Origin: Schmidtea polychroa
Lineage: Eukaryota
DNA length: 64,000 bases
Assembly: GCA_044892525.1 (NCBI GenBank)
Contig: CM097887.1
Coordinates: forward strand, 87,584,397-87,648,396
Direction: 5' to 3'
Below are positions 20,880 through 64,000 of this stretch, one piece after another (within the stretch, counting starts at the first letter, position 1; each line of letters opens with the position of its first letter). The notes beneath the pieces were generated by a model. That model was not told the origin of the DNA. It ran no database searches and was given only the letters and a program-made list of their open reading frames with translations. A program made the translations under genes and the position numbers.

Positions 20880-21860
20880 GTGAGATGAAGAAGGCCAGAA
20901 CAGAATATGACAAGAAGTTACAGAGACGCGGTTACAAATCATGCAAGAAATATTGTATCACCGAGATATAATAGCGAACCGAGAGAGTATCGTGAAGAAA
21001 GACCGAACAGAACTAAGAACGAATGTTTGACATATCACAAGGTAGGACATTTGAGTAGAGATTGCATAACAAACGCAGTTATATGTTTTACATGTGGAAG
21101 ACAAGGACATGTAAGTAGTCAGCGTCCACAGATGCAGAGATAAATTATCGAATGTTATGCGTGTGGTACCCCGGAACACGTGAGAAGAGAAGAGTTGCAA
21201 AAACAATTTGGTATTCAACTAAAGTGATCAGTAGAAGATATCGAGAAAACAAAGCAAGAGTACTTGTGCAGTATTAAAGCTAAATTTGGAAAGACAATAA
21301 CAGAGATGGATCGATTTCAAAGAGCAAAGATAAATAAACTTTAAAGTTAAAAAAACCCAATACTACTAAACATTATAATAATGAATAAAAATGTTTTATG
21401 GCTGATAAATGGGACAAAGCTGTTGAGGCATTAAATGGAAACTCAAGGAAAACCGATAAATATTACACCTTCAACAAGGTCAGGGCAATACTGCTTTAAC
21501 AGAATGCCAATTGGAATGGCAGTGACACCGGGTATGTTTCAGAAACTGATGGGAAAAGTATTAATTGGTACGAGATATGCAGTAGTAAACCTAGACGATA
21601 TTTTTATATTTACAGAAATGATCAATCATCACAATGAAATGTTGGACAAAATTGGAAAGGCAGGTTTTAGGATAAACCCTGAAAAGTGCCATATCCTTAT
21701 AGAAGAAGTCGAATATTTAGGTCATATAATCAACAAAGATGGAATACAACCCATCAAAGCTAGACGCGATTAAATCATTTGAAAAGCCAAAATATGTTAA
21801 GAATCTGAGATGCTACCTAAGAACAACGCAATTTCAGACATGGATTAACTACCTCAGTAG
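20880..21860 (+). mobile_element. Ty3/gypsy LTR retrotransposon remnant (gag zinc knuckles plus RT)
   Basis: Three CCHC-like knuckles (CLTYHKVGHLSRDC, CFTCGRQGHVSSQR, CYACGTPEHVRRE); RT motifs GQYCFNRMPIG..VTPGMFQKLM, NLDDIFIF (YxDD decayed), INPEKC, VEYLGHII. Stops and deletions present. Confidence 0.88.
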
Positions 21861-26976: not shown

Positions 26977-29900
26977 TTACATTTTATTACGCTTATTAAA
27001 ACTTGCTAAAATTCCTTTACCATCGGTTGGAATTTTTGCTACCTGTTTTGGATTTGAATTAGTTTTAACCTCTTCCTTTTTCTCGGGATTTTCCGATGAG
27101 TTCAACTTTAAATTTTTTGACTGAGTATTCGAATGGTCAACCACTATCTTTCGTTTTTTCGAATTACGTTCAGATTCATTAACTTTATTCTGATTGGCTG
27201 TTTCTATATTCTTTCTCTTCTTATTGGCTACTTCCATTACTTGAGCACCTTTTCTTACTTTCGGTTTCTTATTGGACTTAACTGATTTTTTAACAACATT
27301 TTCTTCTTCTTTTTCCTCATCTACCTCCATTGCCTCATTTTCTCTTCGTTCCTGTTTAATTACTCTAGTTTTCTCTCGAACTTTTCTGACACTTTTATTT
27401 CTAATTTAGATTAAAGTCAAATAAATTATAATTTGCGAATTAAACTTGTAAATCAAGGCTTTCAAATCGATCTCTCTTTTATGGAAATCAGATAGATCAA
27501 CGCCTTTCAATTCTGCCATTTGAGGGATTCTTAAAAGTCCGAGGCTATTTGCAAATTTCCCGATATTAATATCTAGAATTGGTAAATTAGCGGTAAATTA
27601 GCAGCTGTAACTAACTGGATATTTTGAAAATATATTTCAAATCATGTTTCCTATAGAACATAACATATGCAATAAACGCATTGACACTCTTTTCGTACAG
27701 CAATCGATCGGCAATGCATAAATCTTGCATCCGAGTTTCAAAAGATTCGATTTGTTCGATATTAAAGTTAGGTTGGTAAATTTTCATTTCAATATTTTGA
27801 TTTTCCCGAAGAAAGTGTACATATGTGTCCTCGGACGATCTAAGTAACAATAACGTTTCACCGAATTGCTCGCATCGAGCTGTCCTACCACAACGATGAA
27901 CGAAATTAGTAGCATATTGTGGAGGATCAAATTGAATGACCCAATCAATATCGGGAATATCAATACCTCTCGCCATAACGTCTGTGCATATCATTACACC
28001 TCTATAGAGAATAAATATGTTATAATACTGAATTTATATTAATTATTATTGAATGAATGGCCGCCATGTCAACCAGCCTAGTACAAAGAGAACACGGTGA
28101 AACCTCGGTTCATGAGTAGCCCATTGACTACCAATGCTTTTATTAGTAATACATTAGCAAGTTCAGGTTTTGAAATACTTATAAATCGAGGTTTCACTGC
28201 GTTACCACATGAATTTTTAATGCAAAATTCTTACGATTTCATTTCTTTAAATTGTTTGAAAATCTTTTCTCTCTTGGATTTGATTTTTTTATGAAAAGCT
28301 AAGAAAGTACGCTTCTTTAACAGACTAAAGATTGAGACAGGATAAATAGGAATAATACGATAAGGAATACTCACAGTGATAAAATAGATTTGTAATAATC
28401 CACACTATCACAAGTGGCCATGAATAATAATATTTTTTTATCCTTTTTATCAGCGAGGAATTTGACCAGGATGTCGATTTTGTTTTCGTTTTCAACAATC
28501 TATGAGATATAATTAATAAATTATTACTTTTTTTGAGGAATAATAAAAAACAAATATTAAAAATAATAATATTAATTCGTTAAATAAATTAATTAATCGT
28601 TAAATAAAATTAATTCGTTAAAAAATTTAGACATGCATTATCTCTTAGTTTTCCATATAATCAGCTATTTTAGTATCAAGAACGATTTCTCCAGTTTTGT
28701 CAATTGAATATAATATTCTAAAAAAAAATCTTATCGAAGCTACCTTATTTTTAAACTAAATGGATCATCTATATTTTTCAGTTCAGTCGACATCATGTAA
28801 CATATCCAGTTTGTCTAACTTTCACTATTTCCCCGTTACATGGAAGCACAAATCGAATATCCATCATTAATTGGTTAAAAAATATTCAAAAAAATTAATA
28901 TTCTTACCCTTAATGTCACAATAATCTATTCAATTTGCATTGGAATTATGATTATATTTAATAGTTAATTTTTAAAACTAAATATAAATCATATCCAAAA
29001 TATTTTTCATTTACTGGGTGAGAATAAATTTATTATTAAAAAATACACCTTATTAGTCAATTTGTAAAAAAAAATTTTCAAAAACTTCTAAGTGTCAGGA
29101 AGGGTAAAGAAAATATCCATCAACTAAGTAAAAATTATTTCAAATTGAAAATTAAAAATCACCATATAATAGTTTGTCATATTTTTAGGTATATTATCGT
29201 TCAAATCCGATTCTTCTTCATGTTTGACTTTGACACTAATCCTTACTGGATTTCTCAAACCGGCTCTAACTATATTTTCAACTTCTGTCGTTTGAGTAGC
29301 ACTAAATAAACTAGTTAGTCTCTGTTTTGGAAGACTTTTGATAATCGTCATCAACTGATCTTCAAAACCCATTTCTAATAATCTATCAGCTTCATCCAAA
29401 ATCAGTATTTCCTGTAAGAATTAATAATAAAATTTAACTTAATGAATAAGCATTACTGTCGACTTTAATGATTTAATCAATTTTGCATTTTCTTCAATTT
29501 CTTCGATTGCTTTAGCGAAGGACCCAGGCGTGGAAATTATTACTATACCCTTATTTGATTCTGAATTAGATGATTCAGATTTTTTGTTGAATAGTATTAA
29601 ATTTGGTTTATGTCCATTGAAATTTGTTAGAAAGTTATTAAACATTTCATATGTTTGATTGGCAAGCTCAGATGTCGGAGATAAAATGACAGAAAAGACA
29701 TCTGTTGATTTAAAAGAATCCATTTTATTTAATAACTCAATTATTGGAATAATGAATGCCAAAGTTTTTCCAGAACCGGTTACAGCTTGTGCAACGATAT
29801 CTTTCTTTTGTAAAAATTTAGGAATTACATGAGTCTAGAAAATTTATAAAGATATTCAAAAATGAAGATATATACTTGAATTGGCGTTGGCTTTTCAAAT

Positions 29901-43670: not shown

Positions 43671-45162
43671 TGACAATGTACCTGATAAAACTTTTGATAA
43701 ATAATTTAACTAAAATTAATTTAGATTTAGGAATAATTTTCAATTTTATTTTGGTTTTCTGAGTTCATAATTAGAAATAGATTGAAATTGCACACTGAGC
43801 AAAAAGTCCGATTATGATAAATCATTGGAAAACCAAAAATGGTTCGAATCTAGGAGGAGTTCAAAGAAATAATTGATTGTTCTTTCTCTACATTTTGAAA
43901 AATAAAATTTTTGAATTATAATCCTTATTTTTTTAAATCGCGCCAACATTAATAATGAAACGTTTTATTAATTAGTATATCATTAAACTTTAAGATAATA
44001 AAATTCTTAGTAAAATAAGTAGAAATAATGTAGGTTTAAACAAATATTTATTGTCTTCAAATGGAAAATAGACATGAAAATTGGTTTGTGTTACTTTTAT
44101 TTATATATGTAATTTTAATACATGACTATTTCATCTCACTATTAATGGATTTCAGTAGTACTGTCATCCGCGCTGTTAACAAAAATTTAAAGAAATTATT
44201 TGCAGTGGACCAGATGGATAAATTTTGACAGAACGTGATGCACTACACTTTTAACCCCCTTAAGCATCAACCCAGGAAGTTCAAACGGAGACAAATGCGA
44301 GAGATTAAAGGGGTTTGGAAAGATGGACAGGAGAAATATTAAAACATTGTTATTATTACATTGCTTTGGCTTATATTATTATATTGATAAAATATGATAA
44401 TTTAGTGATGCGTTTAATCGTAATCATATTAATTAAAACAATTAATTAAGAATAGTCTAAAAATTATTTATGTCATAATCGTCTGGAAGCCAAAAAAATT
44501 TATTTTAGGAAAACATTTAAATATTGCAACGAAATTGATGAAACAATAAAACAATAAACTAAATGCAAATATTTATAAATTAAATAACGATATAATACGA
44601 ATAACTATAATCTAATTTCATCAATGCGATCACAGTCGATTCGACAGAAAATAATAATCACATAATCTCGTATTTTTTTCGAACTCTGAAATTCGTTTTA
44701 TGTGGAAAATTCAGTAAATAACAAAACGATGAAGGAACAAGACAAAAAGTGCATGACTCCTACTACGGTAGATTATGAACCCTGAGGCTCGTCAGGGCAT
44801 TAGGAGTCCTCGTGATAGGGCTCTCCTTTAATAACCGGCACCGCTAAATCGCAGTACCAACGACGCTTGCGGGGGAATTGTGAATATCGTGAAAGTGTTG
44901 ACCAGATAGCATCCATAAGTGAAAAATTTTCCCCACACGTAACCCACTACATTCAATACAAAAATAAACACATTTTATAATAATTATTTGAAAAAAAATC
45001 ATGTTTGACTATTAAATAACAAAGACTTAAAAATTTTATTAAAATATTTGAATATCAATTTTAATTATAATTAATTTGTTTTTGTAAAATTTTTATTATT
45101 TTTCAAATACATTAAAGAAATGAATTTTAAAATTGTGTAATCTTATTTTTGTTTCTTTATTG

Positions 45163-45905
45163 ATGAATAAAGCCATTTTCTTCAAAAGTAAGTTCTTGAA
45201 ATAACTTTGTTAAATTATCTTATTGTTTTATTAATATGGTTTATATGGGTAAATACGTATTTTGCAATGAATATAGTATTCCTTTATTCATTTGATGTTT
45301 ATAGAAATGAATTGTGACAATCATTTATAATATTAATTTAGAAATGGATTTATTAGACTCTTGGTTTGAATCAATCCGAAATGGTAACTTAAAAGAAATT
45401 ATTAATATTTTTAAAACCAACCCGGATTTTATTAATAAATTTACTACTATGAATGATGGTAGAAACGTAAGTGTGAATGCCAACTGACAAAGTTATTTTT
45501 TACAAACAATTAGACTTATCAAACTAATGCAATTATTGAAGCTTCATTTCAAGGAAATCGAGATCTTGTGAAATGGTTGATAGAGAACAATGCAGATGTT
45601 AACTCTATGTCTGATGTGTGTTTTTGATGATTTATATACATTTCATGTTTATTTTGTTAGGGTGGATGGTGTCCTATCCATTTTGCTGCTCAACATGGTC
45701 ATGTGACCACTGTTAATTTGTTGGTACTTGGAGGTGCTGAAGTAAATGTCGAAACAGAAGTAAGCTGCCAGTAGTAATATGATTAATAAACGATAATTTT
45801 TCCAAGGCTAAAGAAACGCCAATTTTGTTTGCACTTCAAGCATATATGCGGGATACAGTAAAAAAATTATTGCACCATGGGGCATCTTTAGTTGGTATTG
45901 ATAGG
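45163..45905 (+). CDS. Ankyrin-repeat coding exons (4 repeats, ~150 aa), open at the 3' end
   Basis: Exons 45163-45187 (tentative), 45342-45466, 45514-45615, 45661-45759, 45807-45905; introns 154/47/45/47 bp; 99-102-nt phase-0 exons. Peptides AIIEASFQGNRDLVKWLIENNADVN, GWCPIHFAAQHGHVTTVNLLVLGGAEVN, ETPILFALQ...LLHHGAS. The last exon ends on a GTAAGT donor with no stop. Missed by the ORF track. Confidence 0.88.
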
Positions 45906-46744
45906 GTAAGTGATAATATTTAATTTCAATTAATATTCATGAGCGATATCACAATTTCAATACTAATTTAACTAATTTGAATAGATTATTTTTAATTAAT
46001 TTCTTAATACCAATTAGACAATGGAATTATTGGTATGTATTTCAAAGTTATTTTACATTTCAAGATTACTAATTGTGATCATAAACGAATACATAAAATA
46101 TTGATTCGTCTATTTTTTTTCTAATCCTACAAAGTGATAATTTGTGTTGCATATATGAATCATATATTTTCAATACTTATTTAGGGGAATTCATAAAAAA
46201 GAAACTTTTTACCGTTTATTTTTGTAATTTATCTCCGAATCCAAGCTTCCTAAACATCTTTATATTTCATTTTATCAACTATCTTCCTGTATAAATTCTA
46301 AAATAAAGCGTACAATTATATAAAAATAAGACTAATATAATTCATGATCACGATTTTGCATCAAAAACGTAAAAATCATAGATTGACTATTTAAATTCAA
46401 ATAATTCACGACTGTTCAATTTTTTTTATTAATGATTTCTATTATTTTTCTATTAAATAACAATTCATTAATTAATCAAATTAATTGTCAATCTATTCTT
46501 TTTATAAATTATTAAAGCAGCATTTCATAGTAAGTTTTGAACAGTATCATGTGATTTTATTCAGTATCTAAATTTTGTTTGTTTTATAATACACAATGAA
46601 TTGAAATTGTAACTGATTCTATAGTATTAAAATGAAATAGTTTTGTAATTTTAAATATTGGTATCATTTTCTTGTTATACAGTTTATTAATTATTTCTTT
46701 TTCAAATATCTTAATTCAAAATTTCATTTTAGAATTATCTACAA

Positions 46745-49700
46745 ATGTGTATACAAAAAGACATATTAGATCCAGCGTTTCTCGATGAGCAGAACAAAAC
46801 ATATTTAGTAGACACGAGTAGCTATAGAAAAATAGATAGTAACGGTTTTGATATCATGAACCGACAGCATGATCGTGAAATCGAAGAAATAAAGCCCGTT
46901 AAGCTTAACAAAACAAAAATTACCACAGAATACGACAGTGAATTAAAACGTCGACGACAGGACCTATTGAAGAAGATGCGACGAACCACTGAACCCGTTA
47001 ATGCTTTGACTCAATTAATTAGAAAACTATCACAGTCTGAAAGCGATTCAGAAAAAATAATTGTTGTTGAAGAACTCATTATGATATGCAATCAAGAAGG
47101 TGGGGTACCCCAGAATAAATTCTCAGATCAAATGATAAACATTTTGGAATTATGCATATGCGATTCTTCATCATCTGATGAATTCATTCTCTTATCAGGA
47201 CAGTTAATGATGAGTTTGTTACACCTAAATATCAGACGTGGTGATGCGGCAATTGTGGATTTTTGGTGTCGGATTTTCGATAAAATGACCAATTTACAAA
47301 TTGAGCAATATACTCAACAGATTCTCAAAATGCTACTAAAAATGATTGAAAGTGCCTCAGAAGGTGTTATTAATAATTTAAAATCCAACAAAGATACATT
47401 TTTAAAAAATTGGGAATATTTCTTTGAAAATCTCTGTTTTCCAAAATGCTTGAATTTATCGCTCATGATTTTAAAAAGTGTTTTCAATCACTGTCCAGAT
47501 GTTGTCATCGATCGATTTCACAATGTTATCGATATAATGATTGGATGGTGCATTCATCCCGACACAGATCTGGTGACAATGGAAGCTCTCTGTCAACGTA
47601 GCGTGGATTTGCACGAATGCTGGATTTCGGATACAATTAATCTCAAAAAGACTCTTAGCAATCTACAGAAAGATTTTTTAACACATTGTCAAATGTTGTC
47701 GAGAATTCATCGTATTGATAAAGATCGTTCGCAAATTGATGATTTAAAATTAAAAATCAAATTTTTCTGTTTTGCATTATCATGTGTTACCGCCGGAGTA
47801 AGCAAAATTTCAGATTTGAATGCAGTTAATTTCCACGAAAACAGCTCCGAAAATATTACAGAGATATTATCAAATGTATATGTCATTGGCATCATTGAGA
47901 AAATAACCGAAGGATTAATAATGTGCAGTAAACAAATAGATTTCGATAATCTGTTATTACAGCCAAATTCTGTAATTCTTCATTTGTTATTTATTTTAAA
48001 CAAAAAGGAATCAGTCGGAACTGTATATCAAAGTGTATTTCGATATGTGCTCGGTACAACTTTGCCATTGCAATCACACATTTTATCAGAGGGCAGTAAT
48101 AATACAAATTATTACAATAAACAATTAATTATTTCATATCTCGACCTGATCAGCATTTGCTTAGTAAATATCAACCTTGAACCAGCAACAGTCGTTCAAG
48201 TTCTCTCCCCAGTAAACTGGATACACTCATGCATTTTCTATGGGTCATTTATCGATAATAATCTAATGCAAAAATATTTACGATTGGTAGATATTATTGC
48301 CAAATCCCATTGCGTAACTACATTCTATCAAATTCTTTTAAGTGATCTGGAATTAGCACTTAATATTCTTATGAAAATATCAAATTGTACGAATATTGTG
48401 CGTTTAGTACAAAGCAATGCGTTCAAAGCAAAATCATACGAAACACCACAAGCGGAACTAGTAGTTAAATACAATATCAATCTGATAATTATGCTCTATA
48501 ATCGGTTGAGTGATCCTTCAATTCTAGTACCATCGATACCTGTACTTTTCACCAAGTATTTATTGTTCACAGAATCCAATGTTATTGTTAAGTATCCAAA
48601 TATGACAAGCTTTTTAATGAGTACAATATCCAAAATTAAACTATCTCACGATTTGATTCCTGATTGGATTAAATTCCTCTGTTTGATAATCAATACCGAT
48701 AATCTAGATTTCACAATAAAGAATATGGGGTTTGAAATTCTGAAAACGGTTTTAATAACTAATAAATCAGTTATTGAAAATAACATTGAATTAATTAATC
48801 TATTAGTTAGTAGTGCTTGTAATTTGATGAATTTTGAAAGTGAAAAAGAGGCCATAGTGCTTAGTTGTCTCAATATCATTGTCGAGAGTCTAAATTCTTA
48901 TGAGACATTAATTAATGAAACCAACATAGACAAACTTGTTGCGACTAATGTCATTTTCAGTATGCATTCATCTCATTTAATTCGTAGTAAATGCATTAAA
49001 ATATACTTTGATCTTATAGTAAAAACCGATTCGCCTATTTCCCAGAAATTATTTACTAAAAACTTAAAGTCTATTCAGGCTATTTCAGTATCGGGCCGAT
49101 CTTTCAAATTTCCAATAGATTTTAGCAAATCTATTTTCAATTGGATAATTGATTCAACAGATAAATATAGCTTCGAAAGTAGGGATATTCAAAGATTACA
49201 TAGTATTGTGGCAATCAATCAAAGTAAACTCGAGCATTTATTCTGCAATCGAATGATTATGGTTTATGAGATTATCATTAATGCCTGTTGGGACTGTGTG
49301 CGACAAAAGTTGAAATTCGACCAGAATGCCGATTCAAGGATTACTTTGATGACCATAGAAAATATGGTAAAATCAATTCTGACAAATGGAAATTCTCTAA
49401 AAGCAATAACTGATAAACGGTTTAGGAAATTGATGACTAAATTTACTAGTAAAACTCCAGAAGATCAATCGTTATCAGTAAATTTAATGATTCTCTTATT
49501 GGATGTTCTAGAGAAAATGTTTTATAATTGTTATGAAGGATGTTGTCTTGGATTCCCGTCAGTTAATAAGTCGATAGAAACTTTTTTCGTGACAAACAAG
49601 AACGTTTGTATTGAATGGTTCATCAAAATGAGATTGTTGATCGTTGCTTTAGCTCAATATTCTGGTCAGTGGAGCACTGTTATTTGGCATGGAATGCAAT

Positions 49701-52700
49701 TATTGAAATTTCATTTGGATAAATGTAATACACATTCAAGCTCAGCAGCAAGGATTCTGGTACCAGAAGTTGAAGACTGTATAGTGCTAACATCCATGGC
49801 TTATAGTAAATTGGGAAATTGGGAAAATTTATTTGGATTAAGTCAATTATCAGTTGAAACGTATGGTAGTAAATTTGATTGGATTGAAGCGCTTGCCGAT
49901 AAGACGATTGGACGATTGGAAATGGCCTTGTCAAAATTTGAAGAATATGTAAGAAATCACCATGACCCAGAAACTATTAAATCATCTTCAGAAATGAGGT
50001 TATTGACAAGGAAAACTACAAGTCATAGTTCTTTTATTTTATGCATGGAAGAAATAGCCGATTGTTATAAATTATTGAATAATCCCGATGGGTTGGAACA
50101 ATGGAAAAAACAAATTCAATCATGGAAATCAAATTCACAAATGCAAGAAGCTCAAAAATTGAGTATTAATTGGGCAAGACTTGTATGTCTGACAAAATTA
50201 TCGAAATGGGATGAAAGTCTTGATGATAAATGCATTCCGTTAAGGCAAAATGAGTTGTCCTGGAAATATAGATCAGTTATCGATTATTGTGAAGACAGTT
50301 TGTTTCTCTCTGTCGTTGATAAATGCCCTAATAAAGAAGTTGAAATCGACAATTTCATTGTCAAATTATCATCAATTCAATCTATTTGTGATTTCCCCAA
50401 TACATTTATTAATCCAGATATAATTTTAATCAATGAAAGATTGAAGCTTTCAAAGGCAGCAAATAAAGGAGAAAGTTTAATTGTTGACTGCAAAAAATTA
50501 TCAAATTTTTCTACAACATTACCACTATCAGTTATAAGTTTCTGTAACACAATCCAAAAACAATATAATGTCCCACAATGTTTTCCTAATCAAAAATATT
50601 TAATTCAATGGCACAGAAAGCATTTAAATTTTAATAAATGTCATAGCTTGATTTCTCATTCTTTTACCTCTTTCCTTGGTAAAGAAATTAACCAACAATC
50701 CACGTTAAGTAATTCACAATCTCCAATAATTCAAATGCAAATTGAACGAGAACTTGTAAAGTTACTATGGGAAGAAGACAAAAAGAAAGATTCCCTACAG
50801 CTGTTGACTAGTAGTCTAAAGGATAGTTTGTTGTTTGAAACGAGTGATTCCTCTTTGCACAGTTCTAAATGTCAACTAAACACGAAGTCTCTGTTAACAT
50901 TGTTTATATGGCTATGCAATGAAAAATCGAAATTTTCAAAATTTTGTAATGATACTAAAATTTCTAGTAATCTCCAATTTCTCATTGAACTTGCAGAAGT
51001 ACCTTGGATAAACGGTTTGCCATTAGTTTCACCCCATCATCGATCAATGGAGAAAACCTGCCAGTCATCAGTGACTGATGTTTGTAGTCAATTGCTTATT
51101 CTTGCTAGCAAGTCACGAAACCAAGACAACAGTGATAAAAGTTTCATGGCATTAGCCCAATGGTGTCTTAGTAGATCGCGGTCATTGGATGAAATCGGAT
51201 TTAACGCACAAACGATAGATTTAGCGCCTAAATTAGAAAATCAAGGCTTTTCTAGTGAAACTATTAGTAATATTGAGCTACTTTTAAAGAGTAATTTTTA
51301 TCCATCACAAATGAAATCCGAAAGCGATTGGTTTGGAGATTGTTATGAAGATTCGGGATTTTTAGTTGAATTAAGACAATCTATTTTAGCTCTCGATCCC
51401 GATATTACATCGACAATGGCGGAAGAAGTCGTTAAAATATGGCTTGAATTTGTTACGCATCATTTTTCTCTTCATATCGCAGCTGCTGAAGCATATTTTT
51501 CCTTTTTGAAAGATGCAACTCCAACGAAAACCAAATATAGTCTGTGCAATAAAAATAAAACCACAGCCAATTTGAGAATATTATCTTTAATTGGAAAACG
51601 ATCAAGATCTTTGAGAGATTCCATAATTAATAAAATAAAAACCAGTCCTCCTGGTTCATGGACTAATGTAATCCCACAATTGTTTGCCCGATTGAAGCAC
51701 AGTGATAAAATGATTAGGACCTGTATGTCAGAGTTATTGCAAAGATTGGCAGTTTCGAGCAACAACTGTAGCAAATTGATTGTATATCCCACATTAGTCG
51801 GTTCTATCAGTGAAAATTTAAACAATAGTTCTCCATATCACGATATTAAGAAAGTTCTTGTTGAGAATAACAGGCTGCTAGTCGATGAAGTCGGTGTGTT
51901 TATTAAAGAATTGCGGCGTATCACTGTTTTATGGGATGAGCTGTGGGTTTCATCGCTAGGCCAATGTTATGATGAACTTAATAAAAAAGCCCATCAATTG
52001 CAATCAGAAATAGATAAAATTGATTCTCAAGATGATCTGAAGCATAAAGATGTTATTTTGAAACTAAAGTACAATTCCATTATTCAAGCCGCCGTTTTTA
52101 TTCTTGAACGAACCAAAAGTGCAACAAACATGATTCCAGAAACTCCAAGAGAATCGTGGTTTTATAATATGTTTGCAGAGGTAATTTTTTAATATCGTTT
52201 TTATATTGAAATTATATATATATATTTATTAATAACACAATTTTATAACGTTTTAATCGATATATAGAAACTTTACTTATTTATTTTAATATTAAAAATA
52301 TAATAACCGTCATTAATTTGTTTGTTTGTACGTGTGTCAGATTCCTGCATTTGTTGTTAATTTATAATTTAATAATAATAATTTATAATTTAATAATAAT
52401 AATTTTAATAATAATAATTTAATAATAATAATAATTTGTTTGTACGTGTGTCAGATTCCTGCATTTGTTGTTAATTTATAATTTAATAATAATAATTTAT
52501 AATTTAATAATAATAATTTTAATAATAATAATTTAATAATAATAATAATTTGTTTGTACGTGTGTCAGATTCCTGCATTTGTTGTTAATTTATAATTTAA
52601 TAATAATAATTTATAATTTAATAATAATAATTTTAATAATAATAATTTAATAATAATAATAATTTGTTTGTACGTGTGTCAGATTCCTGCATTTGTTGTT

Positions 52701-55700
52701 AAAATTAACTAATCACAAGAAAGGGGGAATCTTTTTAAACACAATTTTATAACGTTTTAATCGATATATAGAAGCTATACTTATTTATTTCAATATTAAT
52801 AATATAATAACCGTCATTAGTTTGTTTGTACGTGTGTCAGATTCCTGCATTTGTTGTTAAAATTAACTAATCACAAGAAAGGGGGAATCTTTTTAAACAA
52901 CCCGGTTTTCTCACATAGCTTTTTCGAAATCAAGGAATCGTGACAACAACAAGGAAAGTTAAAAATAGAAAGCATTTCACTCACAATTTAGTTTATAAGG
53001 AAATTTTTGTAAAATTTAGCATATTGAAATTTACAAAAAATTAACTGAATTTTTATTATCATTTTAACTTTTCCCGCCATGCTTAACGGGGGATTATACT
53101 AGTTATTCATAAAGATCGAAATGTCTCTACCGAACAGATGTAATTTATCCAGTTTTGATCAAGTATTTCTTACGAAACTGTTACCAAGTTAAATATGTAA
53201 AAAATTTAAATAAAATTAATTTATGAATTTGATTATTAACAGTGACAAGAAAGATTTGACAAATCATGTGGATTTGTAATTTAACTAAGTCTAATTATTA
53301 TCACTTTCTAAGCCGCAATACATGCGCATTATGTTATTAATAAAATAATTGGTAAAACTATGTGGGAAAAACGGATAGATTTAAACGTATGTTTAATGAT
53401 AATTAATTCCCGCTATCTTCTATTTTCATTGTAGAATAAATGTCTAAATGGCCGCAAAATAAATTAAATGCTAAGCTTAATGGTTTTATTTTGATATTAT
53501 ATGAAAATTTGATTAAAACTAAACTAAAACTTTTCTTTAAGGTTTTCTTAAAAACAATCCTTCAAAAATAATTCTAAACTCCAATATTTTAATTTTTATT
53601 CCTAAACGTTTTTTAGTTTTTCAAAAGTGGCTTAAATTTTTCAAATATAAATAATAAACTATAATTAATATAAAATTAAAAAATACTGGCTAATTATTCT
53701 CAACATTGTGAAACACTGAATTCGCTATCGACTTGGTATAGTTACAATATGATTATAATTTGATTAAATATATGAAGTTGTCATGGCTAATAATTGATTC
53801 GACATATAAAATTTTCAGAAAAGACTAAAAATAGTTAATAATTAATAATTTTTCCTGAAAATTGTGTCTATTTGGTTGATTCATGTTAGTATAGACCTCT
53901 ATAATTTATTCATTTAACAGAGGATCGAGATTAATTTATTCTTTAAAATTATATATACACAAATGCCATTTTTCCAAATACTTAGCTTTTCCTTTTCAAC
54001 ATTTCATTATAGGAAAAACTTTATTTTTTGTGAATTATTATTATAAATATAAATTTTATTTTTAATGAGATCAATGAAGCTTATCATAATAATTTTTTAT
54101 AAATAATTTGTTTTCTAATTTTTCATTTTCAATGCATATTTTTAGGAAATTACAAGCACAATTGAAGAGATTAAAAGTCCAAATAATATTCGAGAATTTA
54201 ATGACGCGTGGAAAAAAATCAAAACACTTCAAGAGTTGATTCTTACTGAATCAAATAATAATATAAAAGTAAAAGTAAAACGAGGAAGACATCAATTTCT
54301 ATCTTTGAAATTAGATGATGTCAGCCCAGGCTTAGCTAAAATTAATTCAAGCCTTATTCCTTTACCTGGAATGAACAATAAATCATTGCTTTCAATAGAT
54401 AAACATATTAGTATATTACCAACGAAAACTAAACCTAAAAAATTCAGATTTCTATCAACAAATGGCAAGCAATATAGCTATCTTTACAAGGGGCTAGAAG
54501 ACTTGAGATTAGATGAAAGAGTAATGCAAATTTTAGGAATAGCCAATACAATGTTTAGCAAAATAAACGAACATGAATCAAATAAATATCACATTACTAC
54601 ATATCCAGTTACGCCTTTAGGTACTCGTGCAGGGTTAATACAAATGGTGGAAGAAGCAACTTCTTTATTTTCTTTGTATAAGCGTCATCAAATGCGTAAT
54701 AAAAATACATTTGATCAAATGAAATCGAAAGCGTGTCATTCCAACAACGGAGATATTGTTAATGAGTCTACGATAATATCAGAAGAAGGTCATCCTATCA
54801 GACCAACTGATATTTATTGGCAAAAACTTAGACCTAAATTAGAGGCAGCGAAAATTGAAGTTGGACTTGACAACCGCGAAAAATGGCCTATGAATATCTT
54901 AATTGAAGTGTTTAATGAATTAAATCGAGATACGTCTCCTGATTTGTTATCAAAAGAATTATGGTGCTGCAGTATTAATTCTAATAATTGGTATAGAAGT
55001 TCGATAAATTTCACAAGATCATGTGCTGTAATGTGTATTATGGGACATATACTTGGACTGGGTGATCGTCATTTAGATAATCTATTGGTGAATTTTTCAA
55101 ATGGACAAATGATTCATATTGACTACAATGTTTGCTTTGATAAAGGGGTTTCTCTAAAGGTTCCTGAAAAAGTTCCCTTCCGTCTTACTGATATAATTAC
55201 AAATGTATTTGGTCCGATGGTTGTCGATGGACTATTTAGGATATCTTGTGAAAATGTATATGAAATCATTCAGCAATCACAAGATAGTATTCTAACATTA
55301 ATGGATATGTTTATTTTTGATCCAATAGTCGATTGGTCTTCCGGTATAGAATCAGGTCATTATGGTTCATTTGATGGTGGGAAATACGCTGTCAATTCGA
55401 ATAAAAGTATCATTGAAAAACGTTCAGTAGAATTCGTTATAAATTTGAATAATTTCCAGTCTGTCTTCATTACGATTGAAGATGATTTCAAAAATTGTCA
55501 AGAGAAATTAATCCAAGATTTCCGAAATTTACACGAACACTTGAACAAAAGTTGGTCAACTTGTAAAACAATTGAAGAAATAAAAGCTACTCACAATAAA
55601 AAATTGCAAATGATTCAATATTTGCGTGGTTACGAAACAAATGACGAATGTAAAATCGTAGAACAATTCAATTATGTTCGTACACTTGAAGAACGTTCCG

Positions 55701-58700
55701 TACATCTAGAATTAGACATTCAAAAGCGACAGCAGCAACTTAAACTGGTCAGTATGGAGCACAGTTCATTTTTCAATAAAATACTTTCAGCCTCAGATTT
55801 CATTAGCTTAAAACTGGATATTAAGAATATCAAGAATTTCTTTGAGGAACACATAGAAAATATCGAAAAATCAATCACTGTGTTTTGTGAACAATATAAC
55901 ATCACTCGTGATACAAGTCCCTATAATGAAATTATCCAGGAAATTCAATCTATGCTAGATAACTTGTCAGAGGTTCAAGACGGTTTGATTGTTTTAGAAA
56001 AGTATAGAAACATTATTCAAGAAATGCCCCAGTCGTATTATAATTCAGATCGATGCAGCTACATGCTACAAATTACTGAAAACTTGCTAAAAAATCCATC
56101 ACTAGCAAATATTCAAACTAATTTACAAAGTTATTCCGATTGGATGAATAAAGAGAACTCAGGTTCAATTGAAACGTTTACTAATGAAAAAAATAACTGG
56201 AATAGTTTATTGAAAATCGAGGTTGAACTAATGGAAGAATTACAATCGAAAGTAATTTCACAGTCTCATGAAGATGAAATTCCCGAATTAGAAGCTATTT
56301 GGCAGTTGACAGTTTATGAAAACGTAGCGGGAATTAATTTATTTAAAGCTGTTTTATTGGAACAATATTTGGAAATGGCAAATATAACCTCTCAACTCGA
56401 TACAAACATTATTAGTAAAATACCGGAATATATTACTTTCACTGTTGATTATAATGTGACTTTGAGAAAATATCTGCAACTATTGAGTGCACATGAAAAC
56501 TATTTCAAAATATTGACTAATTCCATGAATATGTTCGGGATTTATCTTAATACTAATGAAGCGGGGATAGTTTGCAATATGATGGTAACATTACAGAAAG
56601 CGTGCATTAATATTCTCACATTCGAAAGTAAGTTTATTGAAATAATAATGCCAGAGTCGATAAAAATTATGAAACAATTAACTGTCGAAGATAATGAATT
56701 GTTGAATAAATTGAAATCAATACTGAAAGACGGTGAAAATATTATGCTCCATTTCAATATTGCACTCACCTCAACATCCTATGATGTGAATAATTACGAT
56801 CATATTCACCTGAAAACCGTAGTGCCGATGAAGGAAAAAATTGCGGAACTAACTGATATCGGCAGTATTCCGATTCATGACAGCTCCAAACAGTTGCGCA
56901 TTCTCATAGCTAGTTTTTACACCACAATCAACCAATCTTATCTATTAGTTTGTGATTTTATTGATTGCTGTATGGGTTCATCAACTCCTAGTTCCTGGAA
57001 TTATATCGATTTGGTTGCTGCCAGCAGTATCAATATTTCTCCGATTTGGAATAAATCGATAAAATTATTGAAAGATGCTCTTTACATGAGTGGATTACGG
57101 TGCATGGTTAACACTCTTGATCATTGTAAATCACTTATCGATTCATTAACTATGAAGCAAGATCAATCTCAATTAGTAATCATATTTAACAATATTCTTC
57201 GCAATTTGGAAATTTATTTTAATTTCATCAATAAGCACGTATTGGTTGGCGTCGGAAGTCAGTGCTTTGCTAAAATGTTCTGTTTGCTACTCGAGCACGC
57301 CGGTTGGAATATAGATACATTGATTTCTGAAAATGTGATCAATAATTGTGCCATGAGTGCTGATTACATTTGTGGATCCGTAGTTTCATTTAGAAAGCTT
57401 GAATACCCGAACGCCAATAATTTCTATAATCAACTTCAATTCAGATTTAATAACTATAAAAATATAGCTGGATTTTCGATAATTGAACCAAATGTCTCAC
57501 AACGATTTCAAACTCGCAATGTTGCTTTCTACAAATCGCTAATCGGATTGGCGAGAAATCAATTAATGTCGTTATGCTGGACGAAAAAACATTTGATTAG
57601 TGAAAGTGATTTGAAGAATTGCGATCTTTTGCCATTACAAGAACTCATCAATGCTTTGAATGGTATTCCTAACCGAGTTGCAGTGTTAAAAGAATTACTT
57701 TTAAAATTAGACACATTCAGTTCCAAGTTTGTGTCGGCGGATGAAAAAATATTATCCGAAATGAAAGATTCCAAAGATGCACTGTGCAGATTAAATCAAG
57801 AAAGAACTCAATCGATCAATAGTGTTAAAAAGCGAATTCTGATGTTCAATGATGTTTTATTAAATATTGATCGATTTGAATGCTTACGATCGGCCTCTGA
57901 ACATAGTAATCAATTCGACGAAGAAGTTATACAATTCCTGTCGGAAAGTAAAGATCTTTTACAAAAATTGTCCGAATGTGAAGGTTTAATAAAACCGATT
58001 GAAGAAGAAATGATCAAGTTGAAGGAAGAATATAAACTCAACACCGATACTTGGTATGTTGAATTGTTGGAAATTTTGCAGAAAGATATTGAAAAAAATG
58101 CCAATGAAGTTCATCAAAACGAAAATCAAATTAAAGAAATTATAATGTCCAATGAAAAAGAAGCGAGAGGATTAAAAGAAAATCTTTCGGCTGAATATTA
58201 TCATTTGATAAACCATTTGAAACCAAATCTAAGGATATTGCATACAGTAACGAAAAAGTTGAAATCCTACATGTCAATTGATGAGACTACATCGGGAACC
58301 AATCAAGACATTAAATCTAAAGTCGATCGGGTGTTGAAAATAATGAGCTTGTTTGAGAAATTTAACTTTACAATCGATGGATTAATGAAATTCATGTTGA
58401 AAGGAGATTCTGAAATATGTATATCGGAATATATCGGACAGCTACATTATCAACTCAATAACCTTGCCATCATTAAAGATTCCATTATTCCAGATTTGTT
58501 TATCACATTGCTATCTCTATCTCCATTGGAGAATGACGACAAGTCATCAATTTACATTTACGATATTGATATTCCATCTAAGTTTGGCTTCAGCAACAAT
58601 AACATGGCGGAAATAAATGGTGCTGACACCATGACTACTCGGATTTCTCCATCTTTGTCAGGAGAGGAAACTTTTGTCGACAGCATTTGTAACAATAAAT

Positions 58701-59023
58701 CTAATCTAATTATCATTAACGAGTTCGATGTTGTGGGAAAATATAGCAACAATAATAAAGAAACCAATGAAAAAGACAATGAAAAGAAAAAGTATAATAA
58801 CAGTGTCGGAGTTCAAAAAGCCATCGAAGTTTGGAAATTAATTGAAACGAGATTGAATTCAGCTAACCAGAAACCGTTGAATGAGTTATCGATTAATGAA
58901 TCTATCGAAATAAAAACAACTTCAAAGCCTGCTATCAATCAGTACATTGACAAATTGATAAAGTCTGCGAGAAGTGCAGAAAATTTGGCACGTATGTATG
59001 AAGGCTGGACCGCTTGGGTTTGA
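46745..59023 (+). CDS. SMG1: PI3K-related kinase SMG1 (NMD kinase), two giant exons, ~3,437 aa from ATG 46745
   Basis: Exon A 46733/46745-52180, phase-0 intron 52181-54145, exon B 54146-59023. Kinase motifs PTKTKPKK, YLYKGLEDLRLDERVMQ, VTPLGTRAGLIQ, GLGDRHLDN, IHIDYNVCF, VPFRLT; long insertion between kinase and FATC; SMG1-type end NLARMYEGWTAWV*. True start may lie upstream. Confidence 0.93.
52234..52899. repeat. Compound tandem array: three identical 114-bp units inside a ~160-bp duplication
   Basis: GTACGTGTGTCAGATTCCTGCATTTGTTGTTAA starts at 52328, 52442, 52556, 52670 and 52828 (spacings 114, 114, 114, 158). Confidence 0.93.
52257..53102 (+). mobile_element. Probable non-autonomous Helitron in the SMG1 intron
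   Basis: A|TC start (52256/52257), 3' CCCG-N10-CGGG hairpin (53073-53090), then CTAG|T (53099-53103); GTTTGT microsatellite near the 5' end; no TIR or TSD. Confidence 0.55.
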
Positions 59024-61096: not shown

Positions 61097-64000
61097 CAGT
61101 GACCGCGGAACATTTTTTGAGCTGGGGGGGGGGCTAATATCAGCAAGTCGTAAAGTTCGATAGACCTCTATCTAGAGAAGAGGAAGGGCAATTGTAGAAA
61201 CCACCGCTGTTTGTATTTTATGGATCGTTTTTTGGCCAAACCTTTTTTAAATGATGGACATTTTTAATCTTTCATCCGCCCCAAACAAAAATCTCCACGC
61301 GATGACCCTAGCTAATAGTTTTTACAGTGTTACTTTACTATGAGTTTCTATTTATTCCCATATCAGTTAAGTCAATAAAACTCCAATAGGCTATATTAGG
61401 TGATGCACAATGACAAGAAAGTTAACATCTCTTAAAGTCATTTTTAGAAAAAGTTCCGAACTTTACTTTCCGACGTTCATTTCTTGAGACGAATTCGTTG
61501 GCCACTGTTAGAAGACAGAGCTCGTCATTTTTTTCTTTGTGTATGTTCAGTACTGCGATACTATTAAATCTCTCTTGCGTCATTGAAGCACGGAGCCATG
61601 TTTTCAGACGCCTCGCTGCAGAAAACGATCTTTCACTTGATGCACTAGTCGCTGGATTAACGCTTATCAGTTTACATATAGTGACAACACCTTCAACAAG
61701 TAGTTTCTCTGTTAATGAAAAAGTGCGCACTTTTTCACATATGCCGTTGAAGCACTTGATTTGTGAATGTTCTTGGCACAAAGTTGAGAAAGCATGTAGT
61801 TGGGCTTGCAATGAATTAATATCAAGGTCAGAAGAATAAGTTTCACTGACAAATTTGAATTCAGCGTTAGTGTTCTCCTTCTTTAAAGATTTGAGTAAAA
61901 GCGACTCCAGTTTCATATATGTGATAAAGCTCTCCTGCTGAAATCGTTGATCAATAGCTGCAATGATTAAATCAAATGCCTCAAAGTAAATACTTCGATA
62001 ATGGTCTTCTGGGTTAGATGGAAATGACGATGTTCCACTGCCAATTTGATATCTAGCAGGCACATTTTTCCGACGTGGAAGTGTTGGTACAGAGATATCT
62101 GGCTGCAACTTTTGTTGGTGGAGTACTTCTGTGTAAAAATTTACAAAAATCTCATCGTTTCGCTTACTCTGCAGTGTCTTCTTAACCACTTCAGCAAGAT
62201 GCTGTCCTTCTGTTGCTGACACCTTTGTCTTCTGCAGAGCTTTTGCAAGGTTGTCTGTATGACGAAATATGTTTTCGGCTAAATGTAATCCAAAAAAGAA
62301 GTCAAAATTTTGCATTTGCGCTTGAACGCCAATAATTCTGCACCGCACATCGGATTGCAACTTCATGGATAAGCAGATATCCCATTCTTGAAAGAGCGCT
62401 GAATAGTTGTCTAATATACGCTGACAGCATGTGGATCGAATTGTCCATCTGGTTGGACAGAACATAATGATTCCATAACTATCTGACTCTTCACCTTCAA
62501 TATTGTCTTTTATTTCACCCAGAAGATTTTCACGGAAAGGAGAATATTTTATAAGCGTCACAATTTCTTTGGCTGTATCCAATGTATCTGATACGAGTTT
62601 GCATTTAGATATCATGTCCTTCACACCCAGACTTAAAGAATGCCCATGGCAATGTGTGACGAATGCATTTGGTTGAATGCTCTGTATCTTTTTTGCAACA
62701 CCAGTCTTACAGCCCATCATGTTGGCAGCTCCATCATAGCACTGTCCTCTGCAGTTATTTAAAGGTAGCTGTAATCTTAGTAGGATGTCGTTGATTGCAG
62801 AAAAGATTGTTTCTGCCTTAATATCATGCAGGTGATAGAATCCAATGAAGTCCTCCTTAATATTCACATCTTCATCAACCCATCGTAGACAGAGAGACAA
62901 TTGTTCTTTATTAGAGATGTCGGTATATTCGTCACATATAAGCGCATAATGCTTCACATGGTTGATTTTTGAAACAATTGTGCGAATTATTTGTTGTGAC
63001 ATTATGGACAAAATTTCATTCTGTATGTCGTGGCTGGTGTATTTACTCCCTCTTCGTTTAATCCATTGGGTTAGTGCCGCATCGTCTCGAGCTCTGAGTT
63101 TAATCAGCTGAAAGAAGTTTGATTCTTCATCTGTATCTCCTTGAATGGCTTGTCCTTGTCTCCCAAGGTACTGTACATTTTCAATTAGCTTTATAAGGCA
63201 TCGACGATTATCCTCCCGATCTTTCTTCATACTCTCTGAGAACATTTCCATAATGGGACGATGTGTGCTTGGAATTGTTACTTCAAAATTTATGGCAGTT
63301 TTATGACATTCAGATAACTGATGTTCTCGAAATCGCATTGTAGCCTTCTTCCAATTTGAAAATCCGTCAGAAATGAATGCATTTTCTTTATTTCTAGCTG
63401 AATCCAAGTTCATAAGTGAATTTTGTTTCTTGCACATGAAACAGACAACAGTATCACTTTCAATCCGATAGTGTAACCACGGGAACTCACGAAACCAACA
63501 GCTCTGAAATGACCGATTCTGCTTTCCAAAATTTCTTTTCGGAAATTCAATATTCATTGGTTGGAATAATTCCATGTTGGGTTGTTGAGTAGTACTGGTT
63601 AATTCAATAAGTTTATTGCTTTTCTCAGGATGATTTCTTTCTGAACATGGATGAGAACTTGGTACTATTTCTTTTTCAATAACTTCTTGTGGTAACGTTA
63701 TCATATGACTTTCCTGTTAATCTCCACAGTGCTGGTTGTTTGAAGCGGAGTAAATTTGGAAACAAAAATATCGAGTGTGGACTGCCTTCTTTTCTTGGGA
63801 GGAGGATCTGTAAAGATAAAATAGTTATGTTTGAACATTTATAAAATATGAATTCTAATTCCTAATAATATGTCAAAATTTATATTATTACTTCCTTTTT
63901 GTTTCGGTTTTACGCTAAAAAGTATATGGTAGGATAGCAGGCGTACAAACTTACGTAGACTTGTCCTGGGAGCAGTCGAGGCACGAATCAAACAAGTAAT
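61097..64000 (-). mobile_element. Near-intact hAT DNA transposon (ZMYM1/Tip100/PRKRIR-like group), continues beyond the window
   Basis: Terminal CAGTGACCGCGGAAC followed by a G-run at 61097; contains the 760-aa transposase ORF; the other end and TSD lie outside the window. Confidence 0.85.
61422..63704 (-). CDS. hAT transposase, 760 aa (TTF-type zinc finger, DUF4371-like core, hAT dimerisation domain)
   Basis: RSFQSCWFREFPWLHY...VCFMC; catalytic DEYTD, QCYDGAANM, CHGH (CxxH), PTRW and PATSASSERSFS all intact. Likely upstream exon via a GTAAGT...TACAG intron at 63808-63954. Confidence 0.92.
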   Translation of the reverse strand: MITLPQEVIEKEIVPSSHPCSERNHPEKSNKLIELTSTTQQPNMELFQPMNIEFPKRNFGKQNRSFQSCWFREFPWLHYRIESDTVVCFMCKKQNSLMNLDSARNKENAFISDGFSNWKKATMRFREHQLSECHKTAINFEVTIPSTHRPIMEMFSESMKKDREDNRRCLIKLIENVQYLGRQGQAIQGDTDEESNFFQLIKLRARDDAALTQWIKRRGSKYTSHDIQNEILSIMSQQIIRTIVSKINHVKHYALICDEYTDISNKEQLSLCLRWVDEDVNIKEDFIGFYHLHDIKAETIFSAINDILLRLQLPLNNCRGQCYDGAANMMGCKTGVAKKIQSIQPNAFVTHCHGHSLSLGVKDMISKCKLVSDTLDTAKEIVTLIKYSPFRENLLGEIKDNIEGEESDSYGIIMFCPTRWTIRSTCCQRILDNYSALFQEWDICLSMKLQSDVRCRIIGVQAQMQNFDFFFGLHLAENIFRHTDNLAKALQKTKVSATEGQHLAEVVKKTLQSKRNDEIFVNFYTEVLHQQKLQPDISVPTLPRRKNVPARYQIGSGTSSFPSNPEDHYRSIYFEAFDLIIAAIDQRFQQESFITYMKLESLLLKSLKKENTNAEFKFVSETYSSDLDINSLQAQLHAFSTLCQEHSQIKCFNGICEKVRTFSLTEKLLVEGVVTICKLISVNPATSASSERSFSAARRLKTWLRASMTQERFNSIAVLNIHKEKNDELCLLTVANEFVSRNERRKVKFGTFSKNDFKRC

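Follow-up and report, generated by a model that had tools for sequence, protein, structure and literature searches.

An ankyrin-repeat module joined by in-frame splicing to the SMG1 kinase of the planarian Schmidtea polychroa, with the same exon layout in two trematodes

Introduction

The PIKKs (mTOR, ATM, ATR, DNA-PKcs, SMG1 and TRRAP) have among the most uniform architectures of large eukaryotic proteins, and their N-terminal solenoids are general docking sites for adaptors and substrates, as in the pairs ATRIP-ATR, RAPTOR-mTOR, Ku-DNA-PKcs and SMG8/9-SMG1. A long insertion between kinase and FATC is peculiar to SMG1 among PIKKs. Kinases bearing ankyrin (ANK) repeats, i.e., ILK, DAPK1, RIPK4, ANKK1 and TNNI3K, belong to the conventional eukaryotic protein kinases and measure 400-1400 aa. 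RNAi of planarian smg-1 leads to overgrowth and hyperproliferation, opposing mTORC1, and ankyrin is not mentioned in the Schmidtea mediterranea SMG-1 paper or the supplements checked (PMC3315482). Here we describe the SMG1 gene in a 64,000-nt stretch of the Schmidtea polychroa genome (hereafter the window), its transcripts and its flatworm relatives.

Results

Gene structure and domains

The SMG1 gene model of the window comprises six exons with phase 0 at every intron (Table 1). After splicing, the coding sequence of 10749 nt has 3582 codons with zero internal stops and encodes a product of 3582 aa, in the order, from N- to C-terminus, of a four-repeat ANK module, a conserved cap-like segment, a linker, the SMG1 HEAT/SMG1 domain, the kinase and FATC. 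A preliminary description of this DNA, made from its sequence, had proposed four phase-0 ANK exons, the last ending at 45905 on GTAAGT, and a strong acceptor at 46732, 12 nt before an ATG and in phase 0 with a 1815-aa frame. Both are present as described: exons A-D are small and carry one repeat each, exon D ends on the donor gatagg/GTAAGT, and the acceptor TTTCATTTTAG precedes ATG 46745, giving the junction product ...GASLVGIDR/NYLQMCIQKD. ATG 45344 was taken as the start Met because a stop codon lies in frame 11 codons 5' of it and because the fluke orthologues have their start Met at the corresponding place in the alignment. The start proposed earlier at 45163 (ATG 45164) found no such support, and a first exon at 45163-45191 was rejected, as the longest contig, collinear with the genome over 45239-45466, runs through unspliced. 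The SMG1 locus is single copy in the genome, and a genome search detected no second copy of the ANK exons at the DNA level. No tRNA was found in the GC-richer patch at 44800-44920. Intron 5 contains a perfect 114-nt tandem repeat.

Table 1. Features of the ANK-SMG1 gene in the window.
Feature	Position	Strand	Evidence
Minimal 5' untranslated leader	45239..45343	+	X1 contig record 3 collinear with genome over 45239-45466
Exon A: start Met and N-terminal ANK-like capping repeat, 41 aa	45344..45466	+	Contig splice 45466/45514
Exon B: ANK repeat 2, 34 aa	45514..45615	+	Pfam Ank; contig joints on both sides; fluke exon bounds
Exon C: ANK repeat 3, 33 aa, 99 nt	45661..45759	+	Pfam Ank; joints in 4/4 runs
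Exon D: ANK repeat 4, 33 aa, 99 nt, GTAAGT donor at end	45807..45905	+	Joined to 46733 in 4/4 runs
Intron 4: 827 nt, GT..AG, phase 0, separates ANK module from SMG1 body	45906..46732	+	Skipped in contigs
Exon E: cap-like NYLQMCIQKDILDPAFL, then charged YD.EL.RR linker, HEAT repeats, SMG1 domain and start of putative FRB-like region; 1816 codons	46733..52180	+	Pfam; contig
Intron 5: 1965 nt, GT..AG, phase 0	52181..54145	+	Splice sites; AFH08796.1 spans junction gap-free
Exon F: 1625 codons and stop; PI3/PI4 kinase, long SMG1-type insertion, C-terminal FATC	54146..59023	+	Pfam

Exons B and C match Pfam Ank with 21.5 bits (E 2.7e-4) and 30.3 bits (E 4.3e-7), respectively (cut-off 21.1), while exons A and D and a proposed fifth unit gave no Pfam match when scanned singly. 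The four tandem units of 33-41 aa nevertheless align in register. When single exons were aligned as fragments, the repeats piled up on one another, and that alignment was dropped. The segment after the junction is plausibly a degenerate fifth ankyrin repeat, to judge from a pattern that is kept in trematodes and from MCIQKDILDPAFL, which is invariant in a 62%-identical relative (L006). The ORF at 46745-52192 contains the SMG1 domain PF15785 (residues 743-1135, E 6.9e-29, 101 bits, cut-off 27), the sole such locus in the genome. It also has an FRB-like PF08771 match below the cut-off of 24.7 (residues 1722-1745, E 0.011, 16.4 bits), in a region split by intron 5. The second ORF, at 54236-59023, matches PI3_PI4_kinase PF00454 over the full profile 1-241 (E 2.1e-55) and FATC PF02260 at residues 1567-1594 of 1595 (E 1.4e-9), adjoining the stop. 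With the kinase ending at residue 369 and FATC starting at 1567, an insertion of ~1200 aa lies between them.

Transcript evidence for the junction

Transcript data consisted of assembled short-read contigs from four runs of two studies (X1-X4), which were taken as RNA by guess. The preliminary description had called for a check of the junction from the exon at 45807-45905 to 46733 and beyond, and the exact joint 45905/46733 (827 nt skipped, GT..AG) occurs in contigs of all four runs and both studies. The contigs also contain the joints 45466/45514 (in three runs), 45615/45661 and 45759/45807, each GT..AG. They continue unbroken past 46733 through the SMG1 frame; one contig is 8564 nt long, and the contig covering the start of exon E spans 46732-49500 and further. 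Over the intron-4 stretch 46024-46575 none of the four runs had contig depth, in assembled contigs that lose rare variants, and the DNA runs contain the whole unspliced stretch. In-frame splicing of the ANK exons onto the SMG1 kinase is thus supported, short-read contigs being no proof that one molecule carries every exon. Contigs have loose ends at 45078 and 45115, and a search of the window for an upstream exon that would account for them gave no match. Runs of two other organisms carry 21-24% of exon B-D words.

Trematode and planarian relatives

We compared the locus with SMG1 models of the flukes Paragonimus skrjabini miyazakii (KAF7232449.1, also P0096) and Dicrocoelium dendriticum (CAH8470311.1), both of which are automatic predictions named 'hypothetical' or 'unnamed'. 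The Paragonimus model has Pfam Ank_2 at 57-141 (E 4e-13 to 7e-14; 52.7 bits for the ANK segment, cut-off 27.3) ahead of an SMG1 domain at 1140-1458, and in the PDB its ANK segment finds ankyrin-1 and DARPins, the lowest E, taken as a sum over the repeats, being 1.6e-60. AlphaFold prediction of its residues 1-260 from a two-row alignment had a mean pLDDT of 37, too low to be used. Residues 4-223 of the window protein are collinear with Paragonimus residues 7-247 by blastp (E 2e-32). Identity to Paragonimus is 37% in the ANK region (52% in repeat 3) and 21-29% in the HEAT and kinase regions. The residues identical to Paragonimus number 17/33 in exon C and 14/33 in exon D, including ALQ..MR.TV.KL, and non-consensus residues are conserved on ANK repeats 3 and 4. 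Exon A resembles the flukes both in its WF..I..G.L motif and in where its Met lies. The Dicrocoelium model begins within repeat 3, and exons A-C are intact just upstream in genomic DNA, so that the model appears incomplete at its N-terminus.

The genomic DNA of both flukes agrees exactly with the window in the position and phase of all four introns, the long one ahead of the giant SMG1 exon included, and in the bounds of exon B. The preliminary description had suggested looking for the same fusion in relatives, and ANK and SMG1 were found joined at identical intron positions in these two trematodes. The fluke proteins have the same ANK(4)-cap-linker-SMG1 order as the window protein, as well as the common motifs WF..I..G.L, GW..IHFAA..GHV, ALQ..MR.TV.KL and YD.EL.RR. 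They differ in sequence (21-37% identity) and in far longer ANK-to-SMG1 introns, the Paragonimus homologue of intron 4 measuring 10.5 kb and that of Dicrocoelium 21.7 kb. Since the fluke genomes have this same exon layout, ANK-SMG1 is an old flatworm form of SMG1, and by these shared positions the fusion is older than the split between triclad planarians and trematodes and kept under constraint. The Paragonimus SMG1 body lies in at least 11 separate genomic blocks, whereas the planarian body has one intron; the two giant planarian exons thus appear to have arisen by loss of introns at a later stage. Retroposition of an intron-poor SMG1 body behind an ANK gene was rejected as the origin of the fusion, because Paragonimus has the same junction with its body in these many blocks.

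The relative L006 reads ttccag/AAC TAC CTG CAA ATG (NYLQM), with three synonymous differences and the acceptor at the same place; the synonymous changes show that NYLQ is coding there. Its intron 5 donor is at the same position as in the window. Smed-SMG-1 of S. mediterranea (JF894292 / AFH08796.1) is collinear with the window protein and ~94% identical over the whole length. It also starts with exon A (40/41 residues identical), which is followed by six odd residues, VSVNAG, and then MCIQKD, without ANK exons B-D (100 aa) and NYLQ. No Ank domain is recorded for AFH08796.1, whereas contigs of the window species include all four ANK exons; this reference protein appears to be incomplete at the N-terminus. 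Protein word-index searches returned no match for the 222-aa N-terminal piece, only the self-match for AFH08796.1 residues 1-450, and only P0002, a called protein of a relative, for residues 1-400 of the first ORF.

SMG1 of other organisms and NMD partner genes

In 38 SMG1 representatives searched, among them models from arthropods, chordates, nematodes, plants and fungi, no Ank was found within the first 700 residues; some models of the set are partial, and its flatworm models are all incomplete at the N-terminus. Human, insect, amphioxus and Marchantia SMG1 have an N-terminal helix of the D.SR[IL]..LLRRL type in common with the window (EPVNALTQLIRKL), and SMG1 of other animals and plants has the HEAT arch, SMG1 domain, kinase, insertion and FATC as in the window protein. 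In the complete models inspected outside flatworms low-complexity residues precede this helix, whereas in the window the ANK module does. A Macrostomum fragment gives a hint of ANK-SMG1 across Rhabditophora.

A check of the genome for NMD cofactors, also suggested earlier, yielded genes for SMG8, UPF1, UPF2 and EST1-type proteins, with PF10220 at one locus only. The idea that the ANK module replaces SMG8/9 is contradicted for SMG8, whose gene is present, and replacement of SMG8 was rejected.

Discussion

We interpret the window as holding the one SMG1 gene that this Schmidtea-type planarian has, and its normal mRNA as encoding one 3582-aa polypeptide (probability roughly 0.85). The preliminary description had likewise predicted one ANK-SMG1 protein of ~3,590 aa instead of two genes, and the junction in four runs, the 3582 open codons and the layout in two trematodes bear this out. 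The ANK(4)-cap-linker-SMG1 architecture itself is held with high confidence. The polypeptide would comprise four ankyrin repeats and a conserved helix-pair-like cap (NYLQMCIQKDILDPAFL), followed by a charged linker of ~60-80 aa with a conserved YD.EL.RR+.L motif at its end and by the canonical SMG1 body, in which the HEAT arch and SMG1 domain precede a putative FRB-like region, the kinase, the long insertion and FATC. A folded ANK module in flatworms would thereby sit where SMG1 of other animals has a low-complexity tail before the conserved helix.

An origin of the join in chimeric contigs or a mis-scaffolded genome deserves virtually no weight. The junction does come from de Bruijn contigs, and a contig spanning two genes would show no single transcript, but the joints fall exactly on canonical GT..AG sites in four runs of two studies, the unspliced stretch is complete in DNA runs, and the layout recurs in two independent fluke genomes. 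We also consider it quite improbable that one transcript carries two units, with the ANK exons as a 5' leader or small protein, SMG1 made from ATG 46745 or from a promoter in intron 4, and the fusion a minor or non-functional read-through. Such an arrangement would fit an ATG only 12 nt 3' of the acceptor, and read-through of the donor at 45905 reaches a stop after five codons (VSDNI*), so that an unspliced ANK-only product of 146 aa could be made. Contigs are moreover blind to RNA starts and rare isoforms, and a minor SMG1-only transcript may arise inside intron 4. However, in 4/4 runs the contig reaching the SMG1 5' end crosses the junction into exon D unbroken, with 46024-46575 uncovered. 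The four codons ahead of ATG 46745 are conserved in L006 via synonymous changes behind a conserved acceptor, and as far as trematodes the ANK module and cap segment are kept in frame, with every intron phase unchanged. P0002 begins at the Met of ATG 46745, but it was only called as an ORF from DNA, on a contig of 6.2 kb.

Within a single ANK-SMG1 polypeptide, the function of the module can be approached by analogy. Because PIKK N-terminal solenoids dock adaptors, a tethered protein-binding module would be the likeliest role: it might bring a flatworm partner or substrate to SMG1, or determine where SMG1 localises, and would do so alongside SMG8 and not in its place. We would put even odds on such a recruiter of partners or substrates. 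Alternatively, the module could act intramolecularly, docking back onto the HEAT arch, the kinase or the insertion of the same SMG1 molecule as a built-in regulator. Cryo-EM work shows regulation of SMG1 by intramolecular and SMG8-mediated occlusion, and the SMG1 insertion and the SMG8 C-terminus are reported to be autoinhibitory. The flexible linker with its conserved terminal motif could let the module reach back, and the conserved non-consensus residues of repeats 3 and 4 would suit such an internal contact, but ANK modules mostly bind other proteins and we regard internal docking as rather unlikely. Equally doubtful is the wider proposal that ANK-SMG1 is a derived character common to flatworms, possibly to all Rhabditophora, in which ANK would couple SMG1 to a pathway beyond classical NMD.

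A folded ANK module at a PIKK N-terminus, kept from planarians to flukes, would be an unusual and stable departure from a uniform architecture, and its ~165 aa offer a defined, expressible bait for flatworm SMG1 partners beyond SMG8/9 and UPF1. The planarian smg-1 RNAi phenotype had been interpreted with a protein sequence that has no copy of three of the four ANK exons (PMC3315482). Parasitic flukes carry the module, and none of the vertebrate and insect SMG1s checked does; if it is a flatworm-specific recruiter, an essential kinase would differ between parasite and host.

The preliminary description held that no ankyrin-bearing PIKK is known. This stands for the literature searched, in which flatworm ANK-SMG1 is absent, but not for databases, as the fusion is already implicit in the precomputed Ank hits of the public Paragonimus model. 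ANK-SMG1 resembles ILK, DAPK1, RIPK4, ANKK1 and TNNI3K in combining an N-terminal ANK docking module with a kinase. Unlike these conventional kinases, it is a 3582-aa PIKK, a member of an otherwise uniform family.

The ANK-SMG1 gene model

The window is AT-rich (GC 22–37%) and lies at C3:87.58 Mb of the 781-Mb genome. Four small ankyrin (ANK) exons, A–D, each encode one unit of 33–41 aa; the introns between them, all GT..AG, measure 47, 45 and 47 nt. Scored singly, exons A and D gave no Pfam match, and they appear to be in register with the ANK repeat on visual inspection and by comparison with their counterparts in flukes. The acceptor TTTCATTTTAG ends at 46732, and the frame open from 46733 comprises 1816 codons, beginning with NYLQ and continuing with the Met of a 1815-aa ORF (ORF1) that carries the SMG1 domain (Pfam, E 6.9e-29). 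The spliced CDS of 10749 nt (3582 codons) contains no internal stops. The exons, phases, donor, acceptor and SMG1 frame listed in the preliminary description were all found in place; the start it proposed at 45163/45164 is replaced here by Met 45344, which is preceded by an in-frame stop and aligns with the start Met of fluke orthologues, a contig of the putative RNA run X1 being unspliced from 45239.

Features of the window and motifs common to it and the Paragonimus skrjabini miyazakii protein KAF7232449.1
Feature	Position	Strand	Description	Common motif
Exon A (unit 1)	45344–45466	+	phase 0, GT..AG intron border	WF..I..GNL
Exon B (unit 2)	45514–45615	+	phase 0; Pfam Ank 21.5 bits when scored alone	D[LI]V[KR]W..N.AD.N
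Exon C (unit 3)	45661–45759	+	phase 0; Pfam Ank 30.3 bits when scored alone	GW..IHFAA..GHV.T
Exon D (unit 4)	45807–45905	+	phase 0; ends gatagg/GTAAGT	ETP...ALQ..MR.TV.KL
Cap segment				IL.P..L
Linker end				YD.EL.RR+.L
SMG1 intron 5	52181–54145	+	1965 nt, phase 0	
Tandem repeat in intron 5	52321–52702		perfect, 114-nt unit, 3.4 copies, 100% identity	
Second giant exon	54146–59023	+	PI3/PI4 kinase domain E 2.1e-55, insertion of ~1200 aa, terminal FATC (Pfam)	
Reverse-transcriptase fragment	21435–21773	+	RVT_1 E 1.4e-13	
Helicase ORF	27611–27994	-	exon-sized; Helicase_C E 5e-13 and SPB4-type C-terminal extension	
DUF4371 ORF	61422–63704	-	uninterrupted, 760 aa; Pfam DUF4371 E 3.6e-22	

Blocks similar to the tandem repeat of intron 5 flank it at ~52240–52320 and ~52730–52860, and the repeat appears either to have expanded recently or to be what is left of a mobile element. 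Elsewhere in the window, the DUF4371 ORF just downstream of SMG1 may encode a transposase, either intact or domesticated, DUF4371 being a domain of hAT-like transposase-derived proteins. The helicase ORF, within a GC-richer block at ~24–28 kb, is a DEAD-box rRNA-helicase-like gene, and the RVT_1 fragment is probably a retroelement remnant.

Transcript evidence for the join

Assembled contigs of four runs presumed to be RNA (X1 and X2–X4; two samples, two studies), whose species label is that of DNA runs containing the full stretch, were placed on positions 44000–49500. The joint 45905/46733, at which 827 nt bounded by GT..AG are skipped, was present in all four runs, as were 45615/45661 and 45759/45807, and 45466/45514 was present in three of the four. 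Four canonical-site introns are thus missing, which is impossible in DNA contigs, and the X1–X4 records are cDNA-derived regardless of their label. A single X1 contig of 8564 nt runs from 45239 to 45466, through exons B, C and D and then from 46732 on through the unbroken SMG1 frame beyond the end of the placed stretch, although contigs built from short reads are no strict proof that all exons share one molecule. A contig break at 46732 would be expected if a separate leader within the intron served a sizeable fraction of SMG1 mRNAs; none was seen in the four runs, nor any contig coverage over 46024–46575, in assemblies from which rare isoforms are dropped and which do not show RNA ends. X1 contigs also have loose ends of at least 190 letters at 45078 and 45115, whose sequence had no match in the window; they may come from a leader or exon further upstream, in this transcript or a different one, or the contigs may be unrelated.

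Translation of the codons just after the joint is supported by a 62%-identical relative, represented by P0002, an ORF call on the 6.2-kb genomic Logan contig L006; P0002 is 70% identical over the first 400 residues of ORF1. Just 5' of its ATG, L006 reads ttccag/AAC TAC CTG CAA ATG and the window ttttag/AAT TAT CTA CAA ATG. The acceptor position is common to both and NYLQ is kept via three synonymous third-position changes, which means that the other species translates these codons as well. Between the window and P0002, MCIQKDILDPAFL does not vary, and L006 shares the donor that closes the first giant exon.

The published Schmidtea mediterranea SMG-1

A HMMER scan of ORF1 residues 1–1200 against 1.84 billion representatives gave two close matches. 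AFH08796.1, annotated as SMG-1 of Schmidtea mediterranea and encoded by JF894292 (González-Estévez et al. 2012, PMC3315482), aligns collinearly with the spliced model from end to end (~86–97% identity per 300-residue block), and its alignment confirmed the 52180/54146 junction. The differences, distributed evenly, suggest that the window derives from a close congener or a divergent lineage and not from the same strain. The published protein starts with exon A, in which 40 of 41 residues are as in the window, but, unlike our model, lacks exons B–D and NYLQ: within its residues 1–48, exon A leads through VSVNAG (reading into intron 1) directly to MCIQKD. No canonical donor in the window sequence fits this join, which probably reflects faulty assembly of the 5' end or else a rare isoform. 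It is this record, without ANK exons B–D, that underlies the 2012 functional study, and ankyrin is not mentioned in the searched portions of its text and supplements. Small runs with another organism label, presumed to be RNA, contained 21% of the exon B–D words, which hints that these exons are expressed in that organism too.

Flatworm relatives with the same fusion

In KAF7232449.1, a 4097-aa protein from Paragonimus skrjabini miyazakii, Pfam places Ank_2 at residues 57–141 (E 4e-13; 7e-14 when a short piece is scored), with the SMG1 domain following at 1140–1458. Residues 4–223 of the spliced window N-terminus matched its residues 7–247 (blastp, E 2e-32) without a gap across the entire ANK module, and the common motifs show a likeness exceeding the generic ANK consensus. 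At its locus the ANK part is interrupted by introns of 45, 37 and 36 nt, followed by a 10.5-kb intron and a 3.6-kb exon; given a constant 3-residue offset, these four introns are identical to those of the window in position and phase. Its cluster includes P0036, an N-terminally truncated P. kellicotti model among the weaker matches. The 4000-aa model CAH8470311.1 of Dicrocoelium dendriticum starts at an internal Met inside ANK unit 3, and exons A and B, both intact, together with the beginning of C, are found no more than 360 nt upstream (L013:3644–4169, OX104063.1), so the model is N-terminally truncated; here too the ANK exon borders are those of the window, with a 21.7-kb intron before the big exon. 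Identity between the window and Paragonimus is 37% in the ANK region (unit 3, 52%; unit 4, 42%) versus 21–29% in the HEAT and kinase regions. Triclads and trematodes thus have an orthologous fusion, which is older than their split and under constraint. P0087, a fragment from Macrostomum lignano, starts ...GGHVTTVDILLNAGAE, closely like exon C, and has an SMG1 domain ~800 aa later; with a weak local match (E 0.15) and a poor model, it is a lead only.

The planarian SMG1 body (46733–59023) has a single intron between exons of 5.4 and 4.9 kb, whereas that of Paragonimus aligns to its genome in at least 11 separate blocks, a contrast that indicates extensive loss of introns on the planarian side.

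NMD genes and probable function of the ANK module

The preliminary description suggested that the ANK module might replace or bypass SMG8 and SMG9. Replacement of SMG8 is not supported, as the genome holds an SMG8-like gene: the only Smg8_Smg9-family locus found (C2:182259175–182261649) has a main exon matching human SMG8 in PDB (E 1.4e-23). UPF1, UPF2 and three EST1-type (SMG5/6/7-like) loci are also present. With a threshold of E<=0.01, an exon-by-exon search of the genome gave no separate locus for SMG9, which may be absent or have diverged too far for this kind of search.

The gene thus encodes a tethered module of four ANK repeats, perhaps four plus a cap, N-terminal to an otherwise canonical SMG1, and ANK-SMG1 is well supported as an architecture. 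The putative cap, a conserved stretch just after exon D, would fit a fifth ankyrin repeat, in agreement with its conservation; structure prediction of the Paragonimus N-terminus gave a pLDDT of 37. Stacked ANK repeats serve as surfaces for protein binding, adaptors and substrates dock on the N-terminal solenoids of PIKKs, and a linker of ~60–80 aa separates the module from the first conserved SMG1 helix. Most likely, the module would recruit a partner or substrate, or localise the kinase; the main alternative is that it regulates SMG1 intramolecularly.

Comparison with other SMG1 proteins

None of 38 SMG1 representatives, from amphioxus, horseshoe crab, insects, mites, nematode, duck, Marchantia and fungus among others, had an Ank-family match in the first 700 residues, the models being partly incomplete and the sole flatworm ones N-terminally so. 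No description of an ankyrin-bearing SMG1 was found in searches across 8.4 million papers and preprints. The public Paragonimus entry carries precomputed Ank hits under the name 'hypothetical protein'; the architecture is already in public gene models, yet unremarked. In those of the 38 models that are complete, low-complexity sequence occupies the stretch ahead of the conserved N-terminal helix of SMG1 (D.SR[IL]..LLRRL type).
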